37,776 nucleotides of DNA. It comes from Lenisia limosa (taxonomy: Eukaryota; Protista; Breviatea). Location: positions 1-37,776 of the forward strand of contig LPNZ01010094.1 of assembly GCA_001655205.1 (NCBI GenBank), given 5' to 3'. Shown one piece after another: positions 1,270 to 32,130 of the stretch. The position numbers and the translations under genes were made by a program. The notes beneath the pieces were generated by a model. It saw only the letters and a program-made list of their open reading frames with translations, did no database searches and had not been told where the DNA came from. Each line of letters starts with the position of its first letter. Positions within the stretch are counted from its first letter, which is position 1.

Positions 1270-4200
1270 CTATGCCCAATTCTTGGTTTGATGCAATGGC
1301 AATAACAATTTAGCGTGGTCCAAAAAGATGCTCACAACATGTGAAACATCCCAGCAAGCACAAAGTACACTGCTATCAGACTTCACAGTAAGCTGATGAA
1401 ATTCAATTTGATAGATCTTACTTATTTGGGATTTTTTCAGCTTAACTTTTCCTTCATATTTATCATTCTACAGACCCTGTGGTAGAGTTATGAAGAGTAA
1501 TTGCAAGCTTAATCACGAAACACAATTCACATGTGGAGTTTGCTTGGTTTATAAACTAATTTAATGACATGTATATACGTACACTTTACCCATTTGCTTA
1601 TTGCCTGATGATAAATATATGATCAAAACAGAGTCGAACCTGAGTAGAACGTGGGGGTCCGACCGCATGACGTTATCAACAATTTAGCTCCTGTCGCCTG
1701 TCTGAACGTAGTCGCTATTCAGGTTGTCTCTCGATCCCAACGTCAAGGTATGCACTTGTCTAAAGATGGGTTAGTTTCCTTTTACTAGCGTCTGTGGTTA
1801 TCAGAATTGATAGTACATATCATATTTGTATTTTGTGCGTAACAATTTTCTCTTGGGGCTCTCAAATTTGACCGAATTTTTCGATTAATTTTTGATATCC
1901 TATATTTCCCGCTACGTCACTTTGTGAAGTAGTTTGACAATTATAGGGCTTTCTCAAGAAAAGATGAAATAGTCCATTCAGTCGAGTTTGAATATGATGT
2001 GAGTGTTTTTTTGAAATATGATATATCATATCATTTTAAAAAAATACTATTGATATCATGTACTAGCTGCAGTCTGGAGCAAAAAGCTGATCCGCGTAGC
2101 GTAGTACTCCCATAGCCCCCAACTGGTCAATCAATAACCAAGGAATGATGAAGATTTCAAGCTCATTTGGGTTCAAAGGATCTAAAACTATCTAATATAT
2201 CAAGTATTATATCTTATGTGTTTTGCTGTACAAAGTAAGGGCGCTTCATCAACAACCAATCAAACTTCTCTGCATCCAAGAAACAAATCTAGAATTTAGA
2301 TAATAAAAGACGACTTTTGTGGCTCATACAATGGCGACTTCCACCTTGTAGTCTCCGGTATTGAAATAGAAATGCGTATTTCGAGTACGTGTCCCTAAAA
2401 CAATTTTTTAAAACCAATCACAAGTTGATTTTTAAAAATAATTCAATTTTACAAAAAGCCTACCCGAACTGCCTGGAGTGTACAGAAACAAAGGCAGAGT
2501 AGAATTCTGATTTCTTGACCTTGATGGGGTACCTAAATGGCTGGAATGGTGTCAATATGCACTTTATCAACGCATGGTTCATAACATCACATTCTCGAAA
2601 AACTATTCACAATTCCAAAAGTGGTCTATTGAACTAAACCACTAATCAAGGAAATTTACGCAATTATAAGGTTATTTTCAATGATATTGGTCTGATCTAA
2701 ATTGCAACTTTCAAACCTTTTCGAAGTTCACTCTGAGATTTTCAGGAAGGGGAAGCTCGTGTTTGGCCTGTATACAGATTATGATTAAGGCATCTTTAGT
2801 ATGGCACAAAACAACATACTATGAAGGCGAAAAAACCAACGTAGTGCTTCCGACAAACCTTGTAAACTTGATCAATGGTGGACAGTGAAGGACAAATCCT
2901 TGATGGAATGGGGATCCTGACATTACAGAATAGTTAAACATTATTCTGCTGGATCGTAGAGAAGAGTGGTGAATTGGGGCCATAAATAAACTCAACCTGA
3001 TGAATGAAGGTTATGACAGTAATAAAATTGCATGGTGTATCAGATGATTTCATGTGATTATAATATATCCAAATGTCATACTGATTTTCCACATGGTGGT
3101 GGGTTGACAAGATAAGCCCTTCTGTCTGGCAAATATCTCATCGGAGAATGGCTCAACTTGTGGATAATCAATCATCTACATACGTTTAAATAGAGGGTTC
3201 GTCTGGTGATAATATTAGTTATTTGTATCAGATTGGTCTGCGTTGTGATGGCAATTCCTGAGAACATCGGCTATCCAATAGTATACCAATGGTCATCTTC
3301 ATATATAAAGTATATGACGCTATTTTTGCAGGAAGGGAAGGTCAGATGACAACTTCAATGTATTAAGGCTCTTTGAAGAAAAAAATGAAACAGATTTCCG
3401 ATTATTTTGCTCTTAATTTTTGGGGAATTTGAACATTGTTTTTTCCTATAAAATATTATGTATGTCAAAGGGGAAATTCAAAGTGCTGTGTATGTAATAT
3501 ATATACTATATGCAATACTATAAGAGGGAACGATGCCCCAATGAAGGTCAATTTATCTAATTTATTAAAAACATTCGAATTTCTGAGGTTTTCCCTCACG
3601 TCCTTGGCTCCATATGTCCAAAAGATTACCCTATTGCCATTCAGTGACAAACACTGTTCATGAAAAAAATTGTTTTCATAAAATAACGGTTAAAAATGCA
3701 TGTCATCCGCCACCTTTTTGTTTAGGTGTTTTGTGGCTCGTGCATGTATGATGCAAGATGTTCATACATGTATATATATACAATAAAAGAATTACTCCCA
3801 CCCAAGTCCCACTNNNNNNNNNNNNNNNNNNNNNNNNNNCTCCAGCTCTGGATCAATCAGCTATTTTTTTTTTGTGTTTTTTTGAGGTTTGTTATCAAAA
3901 AGTTGAGCGTTCCTTCGGTAGAGTTGTAAAATAAATAGTACAATACATATACAGAACACTGTCAAGCTCCTCCTCGTTCAAGCTAATCGGAAAATATAGC
4001 CTCGCAAATGGAATAAAGTGTATCACTAGTTGGTTAGAACCAAAACAAACCCTCCAGGGATATAAACGTCATTTCACTTTCCAATATAATCAGATATGCT
4101 TTGTAAAGATGAGAAAGGAAAAATAGAGTCGCGATATCCTTATTGCTTGATGAAAAACAAAGCGAAGGGAAAAAAGATCAAAGTCACATCACCAACATAC

Positions 4201-18007: not shown

Positions 18008-21000
18008 TCATAAGCTGCCCGGTGCTGTTCGGGAAGGGGGGAGATTGGGGACATCAACGATGTCTCTGCCGTTCTGTGACCGGGTTAGCCGTGGCACATC
18101 TTCCCGAATATTGGACTCCTTCCGTATTGACCCCCAGGCAAATAGAACAGAATGAGTGCAGGTTAATTTAAATAAGGAAGCAAAACAAAAAGAGTATCTC
18201 GCATGTTGCCCCCCCCCCACATTATACTCAACTTCCCTTTTGGTGCATGTTGCGGCCCGTTGACACTCGAACTTGGGGGGTACGGTCGTGTCTGGATGGG
18301 CGGAAGAACAGGCTTCCTCTTGATCCTAAAAGTGTGAGATTCCTTAACAGAAATGTCATCAAATGAATTGCCGTACAATAGCACAATGAGAGAAAAGAGG
18401 CCTACGTGTTGTCGTTGGAATATGAGGATTCGTTCTCTAGTTCATCGCCAAATGCCATTCCACCCGTTGATGCATTGGGCTGTGGAGGGTGAGAGTAGTG
18501 CTACAAACAGTGGACTATTTGAAAGCTAACATTTTGCTTGGTTTCAAACAGCATGGCTTTAGAAATCTAAGAAAGAACACTCAAAATATTCCACTGAGTC
18601 AAACCTGGGAATGTGTCCTTCGGGGTTTGTTTTCCGGCTAAAAGGTGAGGACGACCACACTCATAATGCAACATGATGAACAGCTAAAGCGACTTTATTA
18701 CTCCTGCTTTTATAATTGAAAAAGATTACCCCTCACTCCCTTCACCCAATATCTACACCACATGGAAAACACCCCTTACCCTGAAGGAAACTTCAGCTGA
18801 GACTGTTGAAACGTCAATGGGCCTATAATCATCAGTATGGCTTAGATTCGGAATAAGTAGGTACAGATTTGAATTCTNNNNNNNNNNNNNNNNNNNNNNN
18901 NNNNNNNNNNNNNNNNNNNNNNNNNNNNNNNNNNNNNNNNNNNNNNNNNNNNNNNNNNNNNNNNNNNNNNNNNNNNNNNNNNNNNNNNNNNNNNNNNNNN
19001 NNNNNNNNNNNNNNNACGTCGGCTGAGGAGAGTGGTAAAGCCAAGGAACATTTTGATTAAAAAAATTACTCATGAAAATGGGAATTACTTTGAAAAAAAC
19101 ACACCCAATACAGTGTGTAAACCATGCTTGTTGAGAGGATAGAAAATAAATATTTGTAACACTACGAATGAAGGCTGGTAAATCCCGGGTACCAGGGGCT
19201 CTTTCCTTCGTTGTTTGATAGCCCCACAGAGAGAGAACTCGATTAATAGTCCGCCTCCACCATTGATCGATAAATCCTGAGGGGAGTATTAATTGTCGTT
19301 GGAGTGGGGGTCCAGAATGAATGTTACCAAAGACATAAACAACTAAGAAAAAAAAATGGATGAAATATCATGCTTGATCTGAGATATATGTTATGCATAT
19401 ACTCTATTCATCCACATTTTGCTTTTTCATATCCTGAAAACATCAATGTTTCCAACCTTGGTGCTTTGACTACACGTGACTTCCGTCACAGCGTAGTTTG
19501 TTTGGATGATGCGGTTGCACGTGTCAACAGTGTCTGAAACAATAAGAAAGAAAACATTTATGCTATGATATACAGCGTATGCGCCATGAAATACATTTAC
19601 TTTATCAGACACCACATACCACCAAAAAGACTGTAACGGTTCTGAAGGTCACCAACAAGGGCAGCAACGACAGGCCCCGAGTGGACCGCAATAACCAGTG
19701 AGATTGGGATGTTCTGATAGGTGAGTTTGATGTGGATGAAAATTTAGAAAAATACTGAACATCATATAATCAAGAAGCAATATTAGGACAGTTCTATCAG
19801 TTGATGGGGGTATCCTCAGAATACCTTGAACTGGAAGAGAGCGATTTCCTCAAATGCATTGATTGCTAACACCAGAGCCTAGGAAGAACGTTAGGCAAAA
19901 ACAGGTACCTCGTAATGTGTATAAGTGCATGCGTGTGGTGGGGAAATGAAGCTTTTTGGTGAGTCAATACAAGTTTTAAAACTGGTTTTGCTATTTGCTT
20001 TTGTTGTTAAAGCAAAAGGAGTTCAAGAACTATACAAACTAGCTACATGGTTTCCTACATTTGTTGCTATCGGGTTTGGAGTGTCGTTGTTCACGTCTTT
20101 GCTGAGACCTCCAACCATCAAAAAGGAATCTGGGGAAGTAAGGGGAGGGGCGGAGGAAACGCAGCAACTGAGGATTTACCAAGCCATAACCTGCTCAAAA
20201 AAGGAATATATACTACAAATCCCATAATTCTTGAAAAATAATTCAATACTTCTTGCCTCTGCAGCATACTTCCAACAGTGTCTGGCTTGAAAAGGTCGTG
20301 TTGATGAGCCAGCCGTGAGAACACACTAAAACAGTGAATGACTGGTCTCCATTTTTTGTGCTTATACAAGCTCAAGAAGCCGCGCTGCTAAAACACACGA
20401 GCTCTCACTTTGATATTCGTCCGAGTAGATCCGAGAGATCCACCGGCGAAAGCGTCAGTGTGATTTCCTCGAAATTGCGCATAACCTGTTGAAAGTCAAT
20501 TGCGATAATGGAATATTGTACCAATCTACTAAGAGAGCACGCGGGTTGAACAAAGTCCGGTCACTGCCACATTCCCCTCCCCCCACAGCGTTGACAATAG
20601 TGGCAGAGGAGAAGGTTTCAGGTTCAACCGTTTTGCCGCTCTGAGGGGGTGAGGGAAGGTTTACCCTTATTTATCAGATGTGGAAATGAAAAATTAATAA
20701 CTGCTTGTTTGAGATTAAGGCAAGATTCAAGATGTGCTTGTGTTTCTCAACTCCTTCATCAGGTAGAGTAATTCCGCTATTTGGTTACTCACCTGCAGTG
20801 CCTCTTGCACAGAAATTGGTATTGATGGCTCAATGGCAAGCTGAAAGAGTGAGTGATAGATATTGCAAGAATAAGTTGAAACACAAGACACCTTCAGTTA
20901 TGCCCACTTGGTACATATTCTCTTCGGGAGTTGAGACGTCTTGAAGAATGTACTCTAACCGCTCAATGATCTCAGGCCTGCACAGTATGACATTAGGTAT

Positions 21001-24000
21001 TTTAAAACACTCATCCTCTCTGGCAATACAAATTGCTACGACACCCCCCACCATAGAGGGCGCCTTAACGGGTTTTCAGCCCAGCATTCGACAAACAACG
21101 ACACAAGTCCGACGGGAATGTCGTGGTTCAAAGGGATGACGGGACGAAGCTGTTTGGGAGTCAAAAATATAACAAGAATCCTGAACATGCAAGAAAGACA
21201 GAAACGGCTACACCACTCAGAGGAGTTGTATAATATATGGAATTTGGAAATAGTCGATGTGTCGATTTCTGGTTCGATAATAGTACCCCCACCGGTTCCA
21301 AACAAGGCGTAGTAACAGCGCGCATAATATCGCGTCCACGCATGTTGGCGTAAGGGCGGTGGCGCGTGGCAAGCTCCCAAAGAACTAGGGGGGGGGGNNN
21401 NNNNNNNNNNNNNNNNNNNNNNNNNNNNNNNNNNNNNNNNNNNNNNNNNNNNNNGCTTGTGAATGGAGTGTGTCAGAAGAGGCAATAGTAGCACCGTTCT
21501 CATACCTATTCCGAAGGAGTAAATGTCGGACTCAACAGTGTGTGGATGCCCCTTCAGAACTTCCGGCGACGCCCAGGGTATTGTGGCTACCTGGGGGGTG
21601 ACAATCCCAACAACAATAGATTAAAACAGAAGGAGTCAGCAAAAGGAGGATAATAGAAAGAGCTACGTTTAAAAGCTCTCAACACAATTGACCCGAACCT
21701 TTCGTTGCTTCTTGTCGGACACCACACCCTCAGCAACATTGAAATCCGAAACCTGAAGCATGAAACATCAACCTGCCAAAACGACCATTCCTATCTTGGT
21801 TTGAGAGCACACCTTCAGGGTGAAACCCGAGTCAATCAGCATGTTGAGACTCTTGATGTCCCTGTGGATAATCTGGGGGGTGCATCCATGCAGACATGAG
21901 ATTCCGCGGGCAGCATCAAGAGCAAGGTTGAGTCTAAGGGGCCATGGGAGGTCCACCTAAATATTAGTTTGGATAGCCATATCCAATACTGCATATTACT
22001 ATTGTCACTAGCGGGGTACTACATATGAGAATGAAAAAGATGGAATTAGCTTGAAACTCGTTTTAAATCGCCCTCAAACAGTTGGGTTTGCAAGCAAGTG
22101 GTAAAGGGACCCCTTCTCCATCAGTTCCAGCACGATGCATCTGGAGCATAAGAGCAACCCGTAGTACAGAGAAAATATGAACAAGACGTTCAGCATTAAA
22201 TCTTAATGATTCAAATGTTACGTCTTGGGATTGCAAAGAAAATGTACCAGTCATTCCGACCTCTCGCTCGAAGGCAATGTGCAGGCTCCATGGAACATAA
22301 CAATGTTGCGATGCCTAACGAGTAAATTCCGTTTGAGAAGGATGAACTGGGCAAAGTTACTCCACAAAAAACCCTAAAACTATGGTAGAACAGCCCTCAC
22401 ACCTGAGGCGGAACAAAGTAGCACATTCCCGTCTGAAGGCTGCCTCCAATTGTGCTGCCACACTCCTGCTGTGTCAGGAATGTTCACATTTATCAGTTTC
22501 GGAACAAATCTACAAAAAAAAACACTTCAANNNNNNNNNNNNNNNNNNNNNNNNNNNNNNNNNNNNNNNNNNNNNNNNNNNNNNNNNNNNAAGTTCGACG
22601 ACGGCTCACTATACGACCGGTCTGGATGGTGAGAATCTGACTACATGACAAGATATACACATTAGATTCATCATATATATATGTATATTATTATGTACAT
22701 GAAGTATTATATTTTACATCATATCTATCTATGTATGTAGTGTAATAGTGGTGAAATAGCAGTTAATTATGCCCCCACTTGGTCCAAATGTCTGGTTCGT
22801 CATCAGCAGCGACGCTGGGGCAATAGAAACTAAGGTGTTAGCTTGAAGAGGTATCAAAATTCCATTCCTCCTAAACTCTGAATCAGAGTTCGTTCCAAAC
22901 AAAGCCCAAATTAATAAATAAGATGATAAAGTGTTACAGGCCACCATACAAATCATATAACGCAACCAATTACAAAGTGGTGTATTAAAAAATCCTATAC
23001 TATATCATATATCATATGATATATTTCACTCATTATGCAGGGAATGGGATTGGAGCTCACATGGCGGTTTTTGATTGAGGTTGTAGGCGAGGGCGTGTGG
23101 CTGATTGGCTGTGGGGGTCCGACGTTCGGTAGTCGGCGCTGTGGTGAGTGAATCGACATCAAATTTGCATTCTCCAATGTAGCAAGTCGCACATTAAATA
23201 CAGAACCACGTAATAATCATCCCAATTAATTGAACTTTTTCCTGGGTTATAAGAAAGAAAAAAATCCGGGGGAAGCTCTTTAGTTCACCAGCATATGTTT
23301 CTCTTCCTCGTACATTTATCTGTGCTGACATGCTCCAGTCCAATTCCCTCCTCAACATCATACTCATGATTGCGGTCACTCTGGGTGAGGGGGGGTTGGA
23401 GACAATAGATACAACAGTTAATGCTCATCAATGGCGAAGGCATTCGATTAGTACGATGACAATTTCCCCCCGACATACACTGTGGGTTGGTTCCTGGGGG
23501 CTTTCTTTGAGCTGACCTGACGGAGCAGAGCTTAACTATGGTGTCAGGAGGTAAAAGCAAACAAAAACGGGCAAATACAAAACAAAGACGGGGGCAGGGG
23601 TGGGGGGGTGAAGAGAAAACGCAACTCTTGGTAACACCGCCTACAACAGATCCGGACTTTCTCTGGTGTCGGCTGAACATCACACTAAATATGTGAGAAC
23701 CTGTTTCATACTTGCCACAATCGGTCTCCGATACAACCACGGCCCACTTGAAAGGATGGGTAGTGGAGTCTTTGGTAAAGACTTTGACTGCAACTGGTGT
23801 TCCCTGAAGCATCACGAGGTGAAAAGAAGAAGCTCAGAGTATATGATACATACAATATAATAAAAAAATATAATATAATATAATATAATACATAATACAT
23901 AATATATACTATAGAAATAAAAAATGAGGTAGTATCTGGCCGAAGCCCTCAACACCATCACGCTTACAAGAGATATTGGAGTATAGATTAATATGAATTC

Positions 24001-27000
24001 ACCCAATCATTTGTCTTACAACTCTGTGCACACAGTTTTTTCCGCGTACATACATAAGATACATATAAGATATGTTTGAAAACTGTGCTCATTCAGCCCT
24101 TTTACGCACCAACACAAATTAGTTACTCTTAAACGCCCACATTCAGCATGGCCCTGAAAACGATGGCCGCTGCCCCTCGACCAATCTCGGGACCAAACTT
24201 GATAGCGTCGGGATCCACTTGCCATGCCGAATAAAGGTTCCGTCGGTCTCGCCTGATCTGCGGACAGATGAAAGGTGAACAAACTTGGGGCACAACTCTG
24301 CAAAAGCATTTCCTATTCTATCTTGGTCCCATTTTCCAAGATGATACCCACACCACCGTACTTTGAGGAGCAGAAGAACAGCAATCATTGACAGGGTCGT
24401 CACAGATGCAATGAAGCCTGCAATGACAACCATACTACAAAGTCAACAGAATTACAACTACCTGAGAATGAATGATGAAATATTAACTATTTAGTTTTAT
24501 TCTATCAGAACTATTCGTCAATTCAGACAACCACGTACCTGGTTTGGTTGTCCAGAATGGTCGCAGGATCTTCAACACTACAGACGTCCAAACTAACGGT
24601 CCATCCAGGCAGCAGCTAGAAGGTGAAATGTAATCGTTTATGGAGAATCGAAGGAATACCTCATCAAACTAATCTCAAATAATCATTGCAAACTACACTA
24701 CAGCAATATGCACAGCTCCAATGTTCTCTGTTGTTGGGAAAATTATGCAACCAAAAAGATGAGATAATATGGATAACCCCCCACAGTGAAACTGCCGTTG
24801 TGGAACTGTGAAATAGACACCATCACCGTTCCTATAAAATGACAAATGCTTATCTTTGAAGAAACAAAGGAAAGTGAGGTGAAGAGGCAAAAGCAAACCT
24901 GTGTTACACTGCTCCTCAAACGGGCCAATCTTGAGCGAGTCCCTTGATTATCATGGGGGGGAAGGGCACAGTATCGTGTACTATGATATACGCTCAAGGT
25001 CCAAAATTAGGTCGTTAATTCGAATTAATGTCGTTAATTATTTACGGTCGCCAAATCAGCTATTCCCCTTCAAAACAGTAATATATTTCTGAGATATTAC
25101 TGTATTTGTTTATGAAAAGAAACATAGAAAAAAAAATAACCTTTCAAAAATTCAGTTTTTTTTTTGCAAGTTCAGCAGACTTTATCGCGAAAATTTAACT
25201 ATTTTGCGCCATTGCGCGATCCTTTTTTACGAGTTAAATTGTTGTGAAGTTGACCGTAACATGAAAAAGAGACCGTCACAGAAAATTGAATTAACAACAA
25301 TAATTCGATATTCACGACATAGTTTAGGACCACGAGTATATACTATATAATACTATTAAGCATTAGATGGAGGCTTTGCTAATGGTTTGTGCCAACTGGC
25401 TTTATGACCAATATGGGGCAATTGCCAGAACTTAAAACCTTGAACCTGATCTACCAAAATGTACCCCCAATACCCAAGGGTGATTTCTCCATAGGTGTAG
25501 ATGGAATCGAGGAAGGACTCCCGAGTGAGCGGCAACTGTGCTCTCTAAAATGTGAACCGTGGTGCTAAAAACATCGAAATTAATTGTTTTCCTGGCATTT
25601 GGCGATGAACTAGAGAACGAATCCTCATATTCCAACGACAACACGTAGGCCTNNNNNNNNNNNNNNNNNNNNNNNNNNNNNNNNNNNNNNNNNNNNNNNN
25701 NNNNNNNNNNNNNNNNNNNNNNNNNNNNNNNNNNNNNNNNNNNNNNNNNNNNNNNNNNNNNNNNAGCCCTCAACCGTACTCGGCGTGGCAAGGGCTAGCA
25801 CGGAGCTGTCTCCGGAGTAGTCCACAAGGTCGGACCGGAATTGGACAATGAACGAATCGTCCGAGTTTGGTAAAGGCACCACCTGTGTCGTCAGATCAAG
25901 GGCTGTAGATCAAAGATGTAGTCAAGCATACCTGACTCAAAAAGACGTTATCGAGGTAGCCAGGCGACTGGTTGTAGAGCTCTTGGAGGGAAAGAGTGCC
26001 TGTGGGCGACAGCATATAGTACACTGTGTTGACTGAAAACCCGTCCTAATGTGTAAACATGTTTGGAGGAATAGAAGAATGATGAGCAATCATAAAAAAA
26101 AACCTCAAGTTTAAATCAAATATTTGTATCAGGGGCACCCTACTTTGAACATTTCGAGCCCTTGGGTAACAGCAACTCCAACACCAAAAATGAAAACTGC
26201 CTAATAAGGTAAGTCGCAAGACCTGAAAACCCCCTGTTATACAAAATCGCCTCATTCCTACATCCGTATTGGGGTGGTCAAACGTCAAGTGCTTGATAGC
26301 CAAGGCAATATTGGTGGAAAAGCGTGGGTAAGATCCCGACGCTGCCAACTATAGCGGGGTTACAATAACGACAACTGTGGCTGCAGTCCCCCTCCGATAC
26401 CAAAAAAGGGTACATGACAACTCTCGATAAATTTCCATAATAACTTCGTGAGGTACTGTTTCCTATGAAATGGGTTCACATTAGCAAGAAAACGACCCTG
26501 GTACTTCATAAGTGAAGCATATCGGACTGCCTTAACACACTAATAGACCCACTGGGAGGCTCAAATTGGCGAGAACTGCCTCCAGTGATGCCAGTGAACT
26601 CTAATCTGTCAGAAGCAGACAACTAGTCAGGCAGTATTTTGAAGGAATGGTCCAACAGAAGAAATCCAAAACAAATTGCATACATATCATATAATATGTA
26701 TCGCATTAATTGGATTAGAATTGTTGTTAAATGAGTACTACATAACTCAAGGATGATCTTACTTCTTCAAACAGTTCTTTCATGAACTCTTCCAACACCC
26801 CTTACAGTTCCAAATTCATCATCCTGGTACAACGCAATGATAACGGGAAGGTCGGCATTTTCGCGAGTTTTATCACCCTGGGAAGTGACGGGCAATGATG
26901 CTGAGGTGAAATGGGTATTTGTGACGGGCAGCTGAGTGAAATGGGTATTTGTGACGGGCAATGATGCTGAGTGAAATGGGTATTTGTAACGGGCAATGAT

Positions 27001-30000: not shown

Positions 30001-32130
30001 GGAATTGTGAGGGGACAAGAGGAACGGACGAACTGAAAAAGACCTTTGACACAATCTAGAGGATAAGTCCGTTTTGATTGTAGAGAAAAATACTCAAAAG
30101 TTATCTATCATTCCTTTATGCCTGAGTTGGATATTTTGACACAGAAGCCACCCCACAGTTGTGTAGGACACGGCGTTGAGCAAACATGAGGGAGACGTGG
30201 GGGACAAGAAAAACATGTACGTCTGATGGGTAACCATTACACGGTAATTGAGTTTCTCTTTTAAAACACCCCCCCCCCCCNNNNNNNNNNNNNNNNNNNN
30301 NNNNNNNNNNNNNNNNNNNNNNNNNNNNNNNNNNNNNNNNNNNNNNNNNNNNNNNNNNNGAGGACTCCAAGCAGTTTGTGACAAAGAAGACTACCTCAAC
30401 TTGAGTGCTACAATGTCAGACACAAAAGTGTTAACTGTTTCAAAATGTGTACTTGGCTATATTGCTTCTGAGTTATCCAGTTGAAACAGATGCCTGCCCT
30501 CCCACGATGAATCCGCAAAGCCATTCACTGCTTTTTTCGCATCATGAAGATCGATAAATAAAGGAATACTGTGGCTAATCTGTAATCTTTAGTACTTCCT
30601 TCAAAACATGTAAAATCATTTCTTGTTGAAGAGAGGTACGACAACATTCAATGTCATCATACCTTCAGCTTCAACCCGAGCTGGGCCAAAAGAGCCGCTG
30701 TGCCGTCCCGTCCGTCGGAACCTATGGTCGTAAATTGCCGAAGGAATGATAAAAACATTGTATCTAGCCAAAGAAGAGAACATTTTAATAAAGGATGATT
30801 ATGTGCAAGCTGAAATCATTACTCCCACCCACCCTTCCCTAACATATTTCAATGTCCTAAGTCAGACAGAACACCATTACTATACTTACTATACGATATC
30901 CTCCAATTCCCACCATAGGAGTTGTCCACGTAAACAACGCCGAAACGAGATACTCCCATCCGGTCGCGGGCAAAGGTTATCAAAGACACCAATTCGTCGT
31001 AGTAAGAGATTCGCATATTGATGATGTTCTCCTGGTGGTGGTATGGTAATCTCAAATCATATCATTGACAGAAAGGACGATTACGAACGAAATGATTCGA
31101 CTTAAATCAATAAATAGAATGCGCGTTTCATATACAAAGAATAAAAAGGTCCTCAAACAAGAAGAGACTTAAAATTAAAATGAGGTCAATGGTGATACAA
31201 CTCACAAACAACTGGAGCACGCAAAAAATAATATAATATATGTAGATATCGAAGCTTAAATAAAAGTTCGTTCATCCCATCATCCTGCCCACTTTGAATG
31301 GGTTTCTCAAGCTTTGGGCCCCGGAATAGGGGCCGATAATAGGCACTCCAGTCTCAACAGCAACTGTGTAGACCGCCTCAGTTGTGGGCGTCCCCACCAT
31401 GCCTAAGATTGCCAGCGTATCTGGGTCTATATACTATTAGACGAAAATATGCTCTGTTTCTGACACAATCCGTAGGGTGTAATATGGACTTGTTGGAAGT
31501 GGCTTATGTGGGAGGGGTAATGATAAAGAAAATTTGATAAGTTGATGTTATCGTTATTGAGTTTATTCTCTGATATTAAAAAAACATCAAAAACCATCAA
31601 AAACCATCAATAATTCACAAAACAAACACCCCAAGCCAAAGCAAGGGCTTTGGCTTGGGCCCTGCGGTAATGATGCTCTGGCGAGTTGCCATGAGATCAC
31701 AACCCTGTTGTCAACTTCCGATACACCCGCTGGCCTACGATCTTCAACAAGCTGTCTGGTGATAGAAACCGCTTGATCAGCGTCGTATCCGTCGTCAACA
31801 TGAAACAGCTGAAGGCCAACCCCGCCAATACCGCCCCTGAAGATCATAAATAAGGTTCACTTAGATGCTTAGAGCAGAGTAAGACCAGCAACAGCCCTAT
31901 GATTTCAATTGCAGGGAAGATATCAAAAAACAAAAAACCAACTTTTCATTTTCCTTTGATAGCGCAAGCACAACACCTTTCAAGTAAGAATCTCCAAGAA
32001 GGAAGGCTGATCCGCTGATAGACGTTGATGAAACAAAAGTGAAATTCGCCGTGCAGTCAGTACATGGTTTAACTTCGTATAACGAAGCAAACGCTATGTA
32101 CGGACACAGCAGCAAAACTAAGAGTAACAT
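18008..32130 (-). CDS. Single-pass receptor: signal peptide - 2x type I periplasmic-binding (VFT) domains - TM - TKL Ser/Thr kinase - degenerate guanylyl-cyclase-type domain - Pro/Ser-rich tail (about 45 exons)
   Basis: ATG at 32130 ([16 protein letters not shown]), followed by a chain of phase-compatible exons carrying all the motifs listed in the domain features. The putative last exon ends [19 protein letters not shown] at 18008. A few exon edges fall in N gaps, so continuity as one gene is inferred from consistent domain order and phases. Confidence 0.85.
18398..18457 (+). repeat. Copy A of a perfect 60-bp inverted duplication (partner 25593-25652)
   Basis: AGGCCTACGTGTTGTCGTTGGAATATGAGGATTCGTTCTCTAGTTCATCGCCAAATGCCA; its exact reverse complement lies at 25593-25652. 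Confidence 0.95.
19450..20850 (-). other. Class III nucleotide cyclase domain of receptor-GC type, predicted inactive
   Basis: [10 protein letters not shown]|[18 protein letters not shown]|VMRNFEEIT (cf. [34 protein letters not shown]); [17 protein letters not shown]|NSFLMVGGL (cf. DVYKVETIGDAYMVVSGL); [24 protein letters not shown]|DTVDTCNRI (cf. [33 protein letters not shown]). Confidence 0.85.
20950..24257 (-). other. TKL-group protein kinase domain (Raf/MLK/CTR1-like), catalytic motifs retained
   Basis: [28 protein letters not shown]|GTPVAVKVF ... [14 protein letters not shown]|[12 protein letters not shown] ... [16 protein letters not shown] ... [16 protein letters not shown]|VSDFN ... 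[17 protein letters not shown]|VLWELAT..PY ... [10 protein letters not shown]. Confidence 0.92.
24362..24434 (-). other. Transmembrane helix exon of the receptor
   Basis: [24 protein letters not shown], followed in the next exon by the basic stop-transfer segment IRRDRR. Confidence 0.9.
25593..25652 (-). repeat. Copy B of the 60-bp inverted duplication, intronic, abutting an N gap
   Basis: Exact reverse complement of 18398-18457; it ends at the first N (25653). Confidence 0.95.
26885..27055. repeat. Intronic minisatellite, five copies of a ~35-bp unit
   Basis: Unit GTGACGGGCAATGATGCTGAGTGAAATGGGTATTT; copy lengths 36, 30, 35, 35 and 35 nt, head-to-tail with no spacers. Confidence 0.95.
29585..29656 (-). 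repeat. 36-bp tandem duplication spanning a 3' splice site
   Basis: GAAATCCCTCAAGACTAGAAACGTTAGATGTTATGT followed by GAAATCCCTCAAGACTAGAAACGTAACATGTTATGT (two mismatches). Each unit contains TTTCTAG|TCTTGAGGGATTTC on the - strand. Confidence 0.95.
31630..31659. repeat. Perfect 13-bp hairpin in a receptor intron
   Basis: CCCAAGCCAAAGC-AAGG-GCTTTGGCTTGGG. Confidence 0.9.

Follow-up and report, generated by a model that had tools for sequence, protein, structure and literature searches.

A predicted receptor kinase of Lenisia limosa with a degenerate guanylyl cyclase-type domain

The window analysed here is one entire contig of the breviate Lenisia limosa (LPNZ01010094.1, 37,776 nucleotides; contig C10094 of a 49-Mb assembly in 11,727 contigs). 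It carries on its minus strand a many-exon gene that begins near 32130 with a signal-peptide-like sequence and ends with a stop at 18402. The order of elements within this gene is an ectodomain, a transmembrane exon, a kinase domain, a cyclase homology domain (CHD) and a short tail. Its product would be a single-pass receptor, in which periplasmic-binding-protein-like ectodomain modules are followed by one transmembrane helix, a TKL kinase and a C-terminal pseudoenzyme domain of the guanylyl cyclase (GC) type.

Within the CHD, the transition-state arginine is the sole key residue of eight to be strictly kept, and the domain is predicted to be unable to act alone as a two-metal cyclase making cGMP or cAMP. 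Since both half-sites are damaged, the CHD is read here as a pseudo-cyclase module of a receptor kinase. That such a module has been retained as a non-catalytic dimerising or regulatory part of the receptor is the explanation favoured below, and it seems about equally apt to hold or to fail.

Catalytic positions of the cyclase homology domain

The eight key positions of class III cyclases were taken from Table 1 of PMC6005667. Four of the eight have changed non-conservatively in the window CHD, two conservatively and one probably, which leaves one strictly retained. Both metal-binding aspartates are gone: the first is replaced by valine (GTT, 20485-20483) and the second by asparagine, the AAT codon of which is divided between two exons (A at 20270, AT at 20129-20128). 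The phosphate arginine, four residues before the histidine of the HSGP motif, has likewise become a valine (19695-19693), and the ribose asparagine is an aspartate within the motif DTVD (GAC, 19525-19523). At the two base-specifying positions, aspartate stands in the place of glutamate (20282-20280) and serine in that of cysteine (19632-19630). The lysine of the KGKG motif is probably a glycine in register (18635-18633), with a lysine one residue further on, an assignment that depends on the 3′ exon model. The transition-state arginine itself is encoded by CGC at 19513-19511.

These residues bear directly on what the domain could do. A homodimeric class III cyclase requires two metal-binding aspartates, and this CHD has Val and Asn at the two sites. 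It also requires a transition-state asparagine and arginine, of which the arginine is present and the asparagine is Asp, and a phosphate arginine together with the KGKG lysine, which read Val and, subject to the 3′ model, Gly with Lys at the following position. The guanine-recognition pair reads Asp-Ser, as against the Glu-Cys or Glu-Ser of GCs. An aspartate is one methylene shorter than a glutamate. Serine at the cysteine position is tolerated in GCs, for which a Glu-Cys/Ser pair is cited (PMC6005667). Divided by half-sites, all three residues of the C1-like half are gone, and the damage extends to the C2-like half.

The original prediction had already reported valine and asparagine at the metal sites, the change of DTVN to DTVD beside a retained arginine, and Asp and Ser at the guanine-specifying positions, and each of these readings was recovered in the sequence, the codons that it had located included. 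Its claim that the CHD is not an autonomous two-metal cyclase is not only supported but can be extended, as the phosphate arginine is also lost and the KGKG lysine probably so.

By homology, the domain is assigned to the class III nucleotidyl cyclase homology domains, with a predicted PF00211 fold. The spliced exons were joined for pairwise comparison with the closest relative in the genome, for shuffle scoring and for a frame check, while searches were run exon by exon. This relative, on contig C68 (L007/L037), was found through PF00211 and again through the kinase exon. From the PETF motif to the conserved arginine, the window CHD aligns without gaps to the C68 GC domain over 137 residues, with 40 identities (29%) and 71 positives. 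The alignment scores 179, compared with -127 ± 24 for 20000 shuffles (z = 12.6), and it confirms the register in which valine falls at the first metal position. Segments of 53, 53 and 20 residues have identical lengths in the two domains; the distance from the second metal position to the histidine of HSGP, counted with exon E6 in the window gene, is 53 residues in both.

The in-register z scores of the individual exons against C68 (Table 1) extend from 0.6 for E6 to 8.3 for E7. The fold motifs had been described in the original prediction as otherwise well conserved, a description that stands for most of the domain and fails for E6. Exon E7 matches Pfam PF00211 with 19.5 bits (E = 7.7e-4), just below the cut-off of 21.9, and its best PDB matches are GC domains (3ET6, 3UVJ and GC-C). 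This was the only match among the single exons submitted to Pfam, as E3, E5 and E8 gave none. Searches of the PDB by phmmer with E8, E4 and the S1 region, all queries that were too short, returned no cyclase match.

The C68 locus (C68:1-6740, L037) contains a kinase at ~1180-2800 and then a CHD at ~3070-4060, and the contig ends within the ectodomain. Its GC domain has all eight key residues (..MFSDIV.., ..YKVETVG/D.. with the slash marking the intron, R-L-G-F-H, RYC, LFGDSINFASR and KGKG), and its exons align to the solved chains of soluble guanylyl cyclase (sGC) alpha and of adenylyl cyclase (AC) V C1 precisely at the metal-Asp motifs. The C68 kinase is a canonical TKL kinase, with GEGSYG (GxGxxG), VALK, HRDLKSAN, DFG and APE. 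The window gene resembles C68 in the order of kinase and CHD, in an HRD exon that is 63% identical, in the ungapped CHD alignment, in the intron within the second metal-Asp codon and in an ELEN..SY tail. It differs in that it keeps only the arginine of the eight cyclase residues, whereas C68 has all of them in addition to canonical kinase motifs. The window CHD would be derived from an active GC domain resembling that of C68, with its length and core retained. As an observation on C68 in its own right, this gene looks like a bifunctional kinase-cyclase receptor and may be the more interesting of the two in evolutionary terms.

About 20 other CHD loci of the genome were surveyed. None has an aspartate at the ribose-asparagine position; the ribose motifs that were recovered have the form GD..N.A[SA][RK], except at two loci with FG[NT]TMNYASR, and most of the loci retain the first metal aspartate. 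The window CHD is the most degenerate among the readable CHD copies of the genome. Two further CHDs, L029 (C5834:48847-48930, ..MFCSFV..) and L030 (C10328:4552-4629, ..GFFGVE..), are without the first metal aspartate. L030 retains the asparagine motif (GDTINTAAR), and both are candidate beta/C2-like half-sites.

Gene model, splice junctions and the upstream kinase

The chain from E1 to S3 consists of 11 small exons that give 251 codons with a single terminal stop in a scripted frame and stop check, and all of the modelled introns are GT..AG (Table 1). At the start of the domain, GKTVEPETF in E2 pairs with GRPVEPETF in C68.

Table 1. Kinase domain and exons of the cyclase homology domain in the window gene; z scores are in-register comparisons with C68
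Feature	Position	Strand	Remarks
Kinase domain	20908..24200	-	~11 exons; motifs read directly, exon by exon
CHD exon E1	20793..20840	-	Helical lead-in before the domain; acceptor ..ctttcag, donor gtgagt; matches C68 ..ILPPHIAAALAE by eye
CHD exon E2	20587..20640	-	..VEPETF..TIVNA; includes the first beta strand and stops one residue short of metal Asp 1; donor gtgggg; z = 5.1
CHD exon E3	20409..20485	-	Acceptor ..caacag; first codon GTT (20485-20483), Val at metal Asp 1; z = 2.5, p ~0.009
CHD exon E4	20270..20325	-	..DLFKPDTVG and final A (20270); donor GT 20269-20268; z = 7.1
CHD exon E5	20059..20129	-	Acceptor ..ccccag; starts with AT (20129-20128), then ..FLMVGGL..; z = 4.4
CHD exon E6	19825..19878	-	Alpha-3 region; placed by length and splice sites only; z = 0.6, not significant
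CHD exon E7	19620..19713	-	Carries Val 19695-19693 and Ser 19632-19630; PF00211 and PDB GC matches; z = 8.3
CHD exon E8 (short form)	19476..19533	-	DTVDTCNR..; z = 3.0; alternatively extends to 19457
CHD exon S1	18759..18822	-	Pairs with C68 ..IHVSKEVAFRLQGAF..; 5′ boundary uncertain, run of N at 18878-19015 just upstream
CHD exon S2	18579..18659	-	Last strands; Gly (18635-18633) in register at the first KGKG Lys
Terminal exon S3	18402..18500	-	Tail and stop codon 18404-18402; alternative acceptor 18480/18479

In C68, the counterpart of E4 reads ..DLYKVETVG followed by a G, and a phase-1 intron divides the codon at the same position and in the same phase in C68 (G/AC) and in the window gene (A/AT). 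This shared intron independently supports the splice junction, and the comparison of the two codons shows that the final base of this exon has changed from G to A. The original prediction had argued from the donor at 20269 that no other acceptor could restore an aspartate here, and the first base of the asparagine codon is indeed fixed by the donor.

At the 3′ side, the original prediction had let the CHD end at 19450. This boundary was found to be wrong, as the C-terminal strands lie at ~18822-18579, upstream of the stop codon at 18404-18402. An early stop shortly after E8 (for example ..DMKKQNVDE) was considered as the 3′ end and rejected, since tblastn guided by C68 located the missing strands and the tail downstream. 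With a C68 exon as query, the S1 segment 18803-18765 was matched at 61.5% identity over 13 residues (E = 0.002), and the window tail ELENESSY (18443-18420) matches the C68 tail ELENSASY (E = 0.09). Furthermore, S1 and S2 together align to C68 without gaps over 32 residues, with 11 identities (z = 6.2).

The presumed intron between E8 and S1 is spanned by a 204-codon open reading frame (19367-18756, minus strand), 46 codons of which lie inside a run of N. Neither a Pfam match nor a genomic paralogue was found for it, and it was rejected as a coding unit and treated as mostly intron, with just the final ~21 codons (exon S1) resembling coding sequence. A separate observation concerns the end of the terminal exon. 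The 58 bases at 18400-18457, stop codon included, have an inverted copy that is 100% identical at 25593-25650, within an intron further upstream in this gene. This copy adjoins a run of N; an error of assembly could account for it, or else it could serve in long-range pairing of the pre-mRNA.

In the upstream kinase, the motifs are a GRGAAA loop, VAVK with its lysine at 23785-23783, an alpha-C glutamate, HRDIKSLN with HRD at 21866-21858, DFN at 21746-21738 and SPE, and the HRD exon is matched by Pfam Pkinase and PK_Tyr_Ser-Thr. The catalytic lysine, the alpha-C glutamate, the HRD aspartate, the asparagine and the aspartate at the DFG position are all present. On these motifs, the kinase is of the TKL-type Ser/Thr class and looks active. 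The DFN and SPE motifs, set against the canonical ones in C68, may point to a kinase that is regulated or has an unusual mode of action. Approximately 25 residues lie between the last kinase helix and the lead-in of the CHD.

Further upstream, the transmembrane exon lies near 24430-24360 on the minus strand and is intact, as is the kinase, and the ectodomain frames give weak Pfam matches to the periplasmic-binding-protein families PF13458 and PF25495. The window as a whole is intron-rich eukaryotic DNA of ~38-44% G+C with 20 short runs of N. A kinase intron contains a dispersed repeat of ~65 bases (window 23975-24055), for which a first look gave 867 candidates genome-wide; at least 40 copies were scored, and their identity to it is 86-95%. 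No Rfam family reaches its gathering score on this repeat. The window and C68 also share a match of 65 bases that had been a candidate for a conserved intron element, and this was rejected once it was recognised as a dispersed repeat.

A possible pseudo-cyclase module, relic or half-site

The frame, the splice sites and the exact segment lengths have all been kept at 29% identity to C68, which suggests that the fold is still constrained. From this we infer that the CHD may be under selection for a non-catalytic role. To our knowledge, class III cyclase domains always form head-to-tail dimers. The favoured reading is that the window CHD persists as a head-to-tail dimerising or regulatory module of this kind, and as such it could hold or orient two kinase domains, in which case the output of the receptor would be phosphorylation and not a cyclic nucleotide.

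Several observations weigh against a retained module. The integrity of the fold is judged from the alignment, and within that alignment E6 has no detectable similarity to C68. The gene has no long coiled coil like the one that aids the dimerisation of animal GCs. The junction of E8 and S1 is ambiguous, as the donor may be at 19475 or at 19456 and a 138-base run of N (18878-19015) lies inside the intron; an acceptor is present at the edge of this run, which could conceal sequence. This ambiguity leaves the residues of the finding untouched. As for the kinase, its activity is not certain, since DFN takes the place of DFG and SPE (~21575) that of APE.

Finally, the searches turned up neither a transcript-derived protein nor an orthologue or allele, and expression and purifying selection are accordingly putative. 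A HMMER search with E7 against 1.84 billion representative proteins returned neither the protein itself nor an orthologue; its three matches, all unrelated and ~50% identical, were cyclases of the 12-TM type and an odd repeat fragment. Word searches for transcript-derived fragments were empty for the region of the last kinase exon, for the P0002 CHD region (used as a length proxy) and for the S1 region. The metagenome loci that matched the kinase exon encode TKL kinases of a generic kind and have no CHD in their neighbourhood, and no allelic or second copy, which was looked for as dN/dS material, was found in the genome. Transcriptome data for Lenisia are described as sparse (recent preprint), and the missing transcript match is therefore weak evidence either way.

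A different explanation is that the gene, or its 3′ cyclase part alone, is an unused relic. The losses would then mark the onset of neutral decay, and the choice of exon borders would be partly responsible for the open frame. The failure of the word searches and of the full HMMER search to find a transcript or an orthologue would fit such decay, as would losses that fall in both half-sites, an unrecognisable E6, and the fully identical inverted copy that an upstream intron has of the end of the terminal exon. The 3′ junctions are ambiguous, moreover, and alternative early stops follow directly after E8. However, neutral decay would be expected to have introduced indels and stops, whereas 11 consecutive small exons remain in frame with GT..AG at every modelled intron, the three segment lengths equal those of C68 despite the low identity, and the upstream kinase and transmembrane exon are intact. 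Decay appears rather unlikely on this evidence.

It is also conceivable that the CHD is a half-site subunit, inactive unless it forms a heterodimer with a cyclase partner, for example of the C68 or C1 type, that brings in the two metal aspartates and the phosphate arginine. The window CHD would then contribute the C2/beta-like half (the base pair and the arginine), and, as in sGC and membrane AC, a dead pseudo-site would accompany a single active site that is weak or regulated. In sGC beta and AC C2, which provide half-sites, the degenerate pseudo-site becomes regulatory (PMC6005667). The combination of absent metal aspartates and a present transition-state arginine is the pattern of C2 and sGC beta, and the serine at the cysteine position is one that GCs tolerate (PMC6005667). 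On C68 there is a paralogue in which a kinase and a CHD are likewise combined and the full residue set is present, and the CHDs of L029 and L030 similarly lack the first metal aspartate.

Yet there is a difference from these known half-sites. The C2 and beta chains keep the asparagine, the base pair and the lysine and are catalytically essential, while the window CHD has Asp for Asn, Asp for Glu and probably Gly for the in-register Lys. Among the four features that a half-site subunit keeps (base pair, Asn, Arg and Lys), the arginine is the one that is strictly kept. Replacement of the ribose asparagine in mammalian AC reduces kcat ten- to hundredfold, which counts against a contribution of this kind. 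Damage to the C2-like half weakens the idea of pairing with an active paralogue, which the original prediction had raised, and a catalytic half-site is considered unlikely.

Lastly, it is highly improbable that the true mRNA or genome has the canonical residues and that the altered ones stem from the gene model or the assembly: the contig does contain 20 runs of N, and three of the altered codons differ from canonical ones by one base, but the valine codon comes right after the sole AG within 30 bases, the first base of the asparagine codon is set by its donor, the only other in-exon donor runs into a stop, at least six independent positions are altered with none beside a run of N, and the intron phase common with C68 fixes the junction.

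Relation to known cyclase receptors

The closest architectural parallel to the proposed pseudo-cyclase receptor is found in the animal receptor GCs. Like GC-A and GC-C, the window gene would combine a periplasmic-binding-protein-type ectodomain, one transmembrane helix and a kinase fold with a class III domain of the GC type. In animal receptor GCs, a kinase-homology domain without kinase activity is joined by a coiled-coil link to an active cyclase (PMC1435932). In the window gene, by contrast, the kinase keeps its Lys, Glu, HRDxKxxN and the aspartate of DF(N), the cyclase is predicted to be dead and the linker measures ~25 residues. Judged by these motifs, the gene is a mirror image of an animal receptor GC and not a member of that family.

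A second parallel comes from Acanthamoeba castellanii, which has 67 receptor nucleotidyl cyclases in which a kinase domain lies on either side of the cyclase (PMC4053784). The window gene is similar to these receptors in its extracellular receptor domain, its single transmembrane helix and the fusion of a cyclase to a Ser/Thr kinase in a free-living amorphean protist. It is unlike them in having a single kinase, after which come the CHD and a ~40-residue tail to the stop at 18402; translation downstream to 17900 gave no kinase-like frame that could represent a second kinase after the CHD. The gene is thus a variant within known kinds, those of kinase-cyclase receptors and degenerate cyclase domains, and not a new kind of system.

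Breviates have been placed as sister to apusomonads and opisthokonts (preprint). The genome may contain a natural series within one receptor family, with an apparently live kinase and live GC in C68, and with an apparently live kinase and a pseudo-cyclase, retained for dimerisation or allosteric control, in the window gene. Animal GCs would be the mirror image of the latter, and one may speculate that both arrangements go back to a bifunctional kinase-cyclase ancestor through reciprocal domain death, a doubtful proposal. If expressed and folded, the domain would also bear on the origin of the kinase-homology/cyclase tandem in animal receptor guanylyl cyclases.

Pseudokinases are well studied. 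Fully dead class III cyclase domains inside otherwise intact signalling receptors, on the other hand, are hardly described, to judge from a full-text literature search in which the term "pseudocyclase" and related terms meant something else in the matches that were read or judged by title. Should the CHD be merely a decaying tail, the finding would be ordinary. If the window gene is expressed and its CHD folded, however, C68 with its live cyclase and the window gene with its dead one would form a natural pair that could show non-catalytic roles of the domain, such as dimerisation or allosteric nucleotide binding. If the mirror-image reading is true, it would mean that a cyclase domain can scaffold a kinase.

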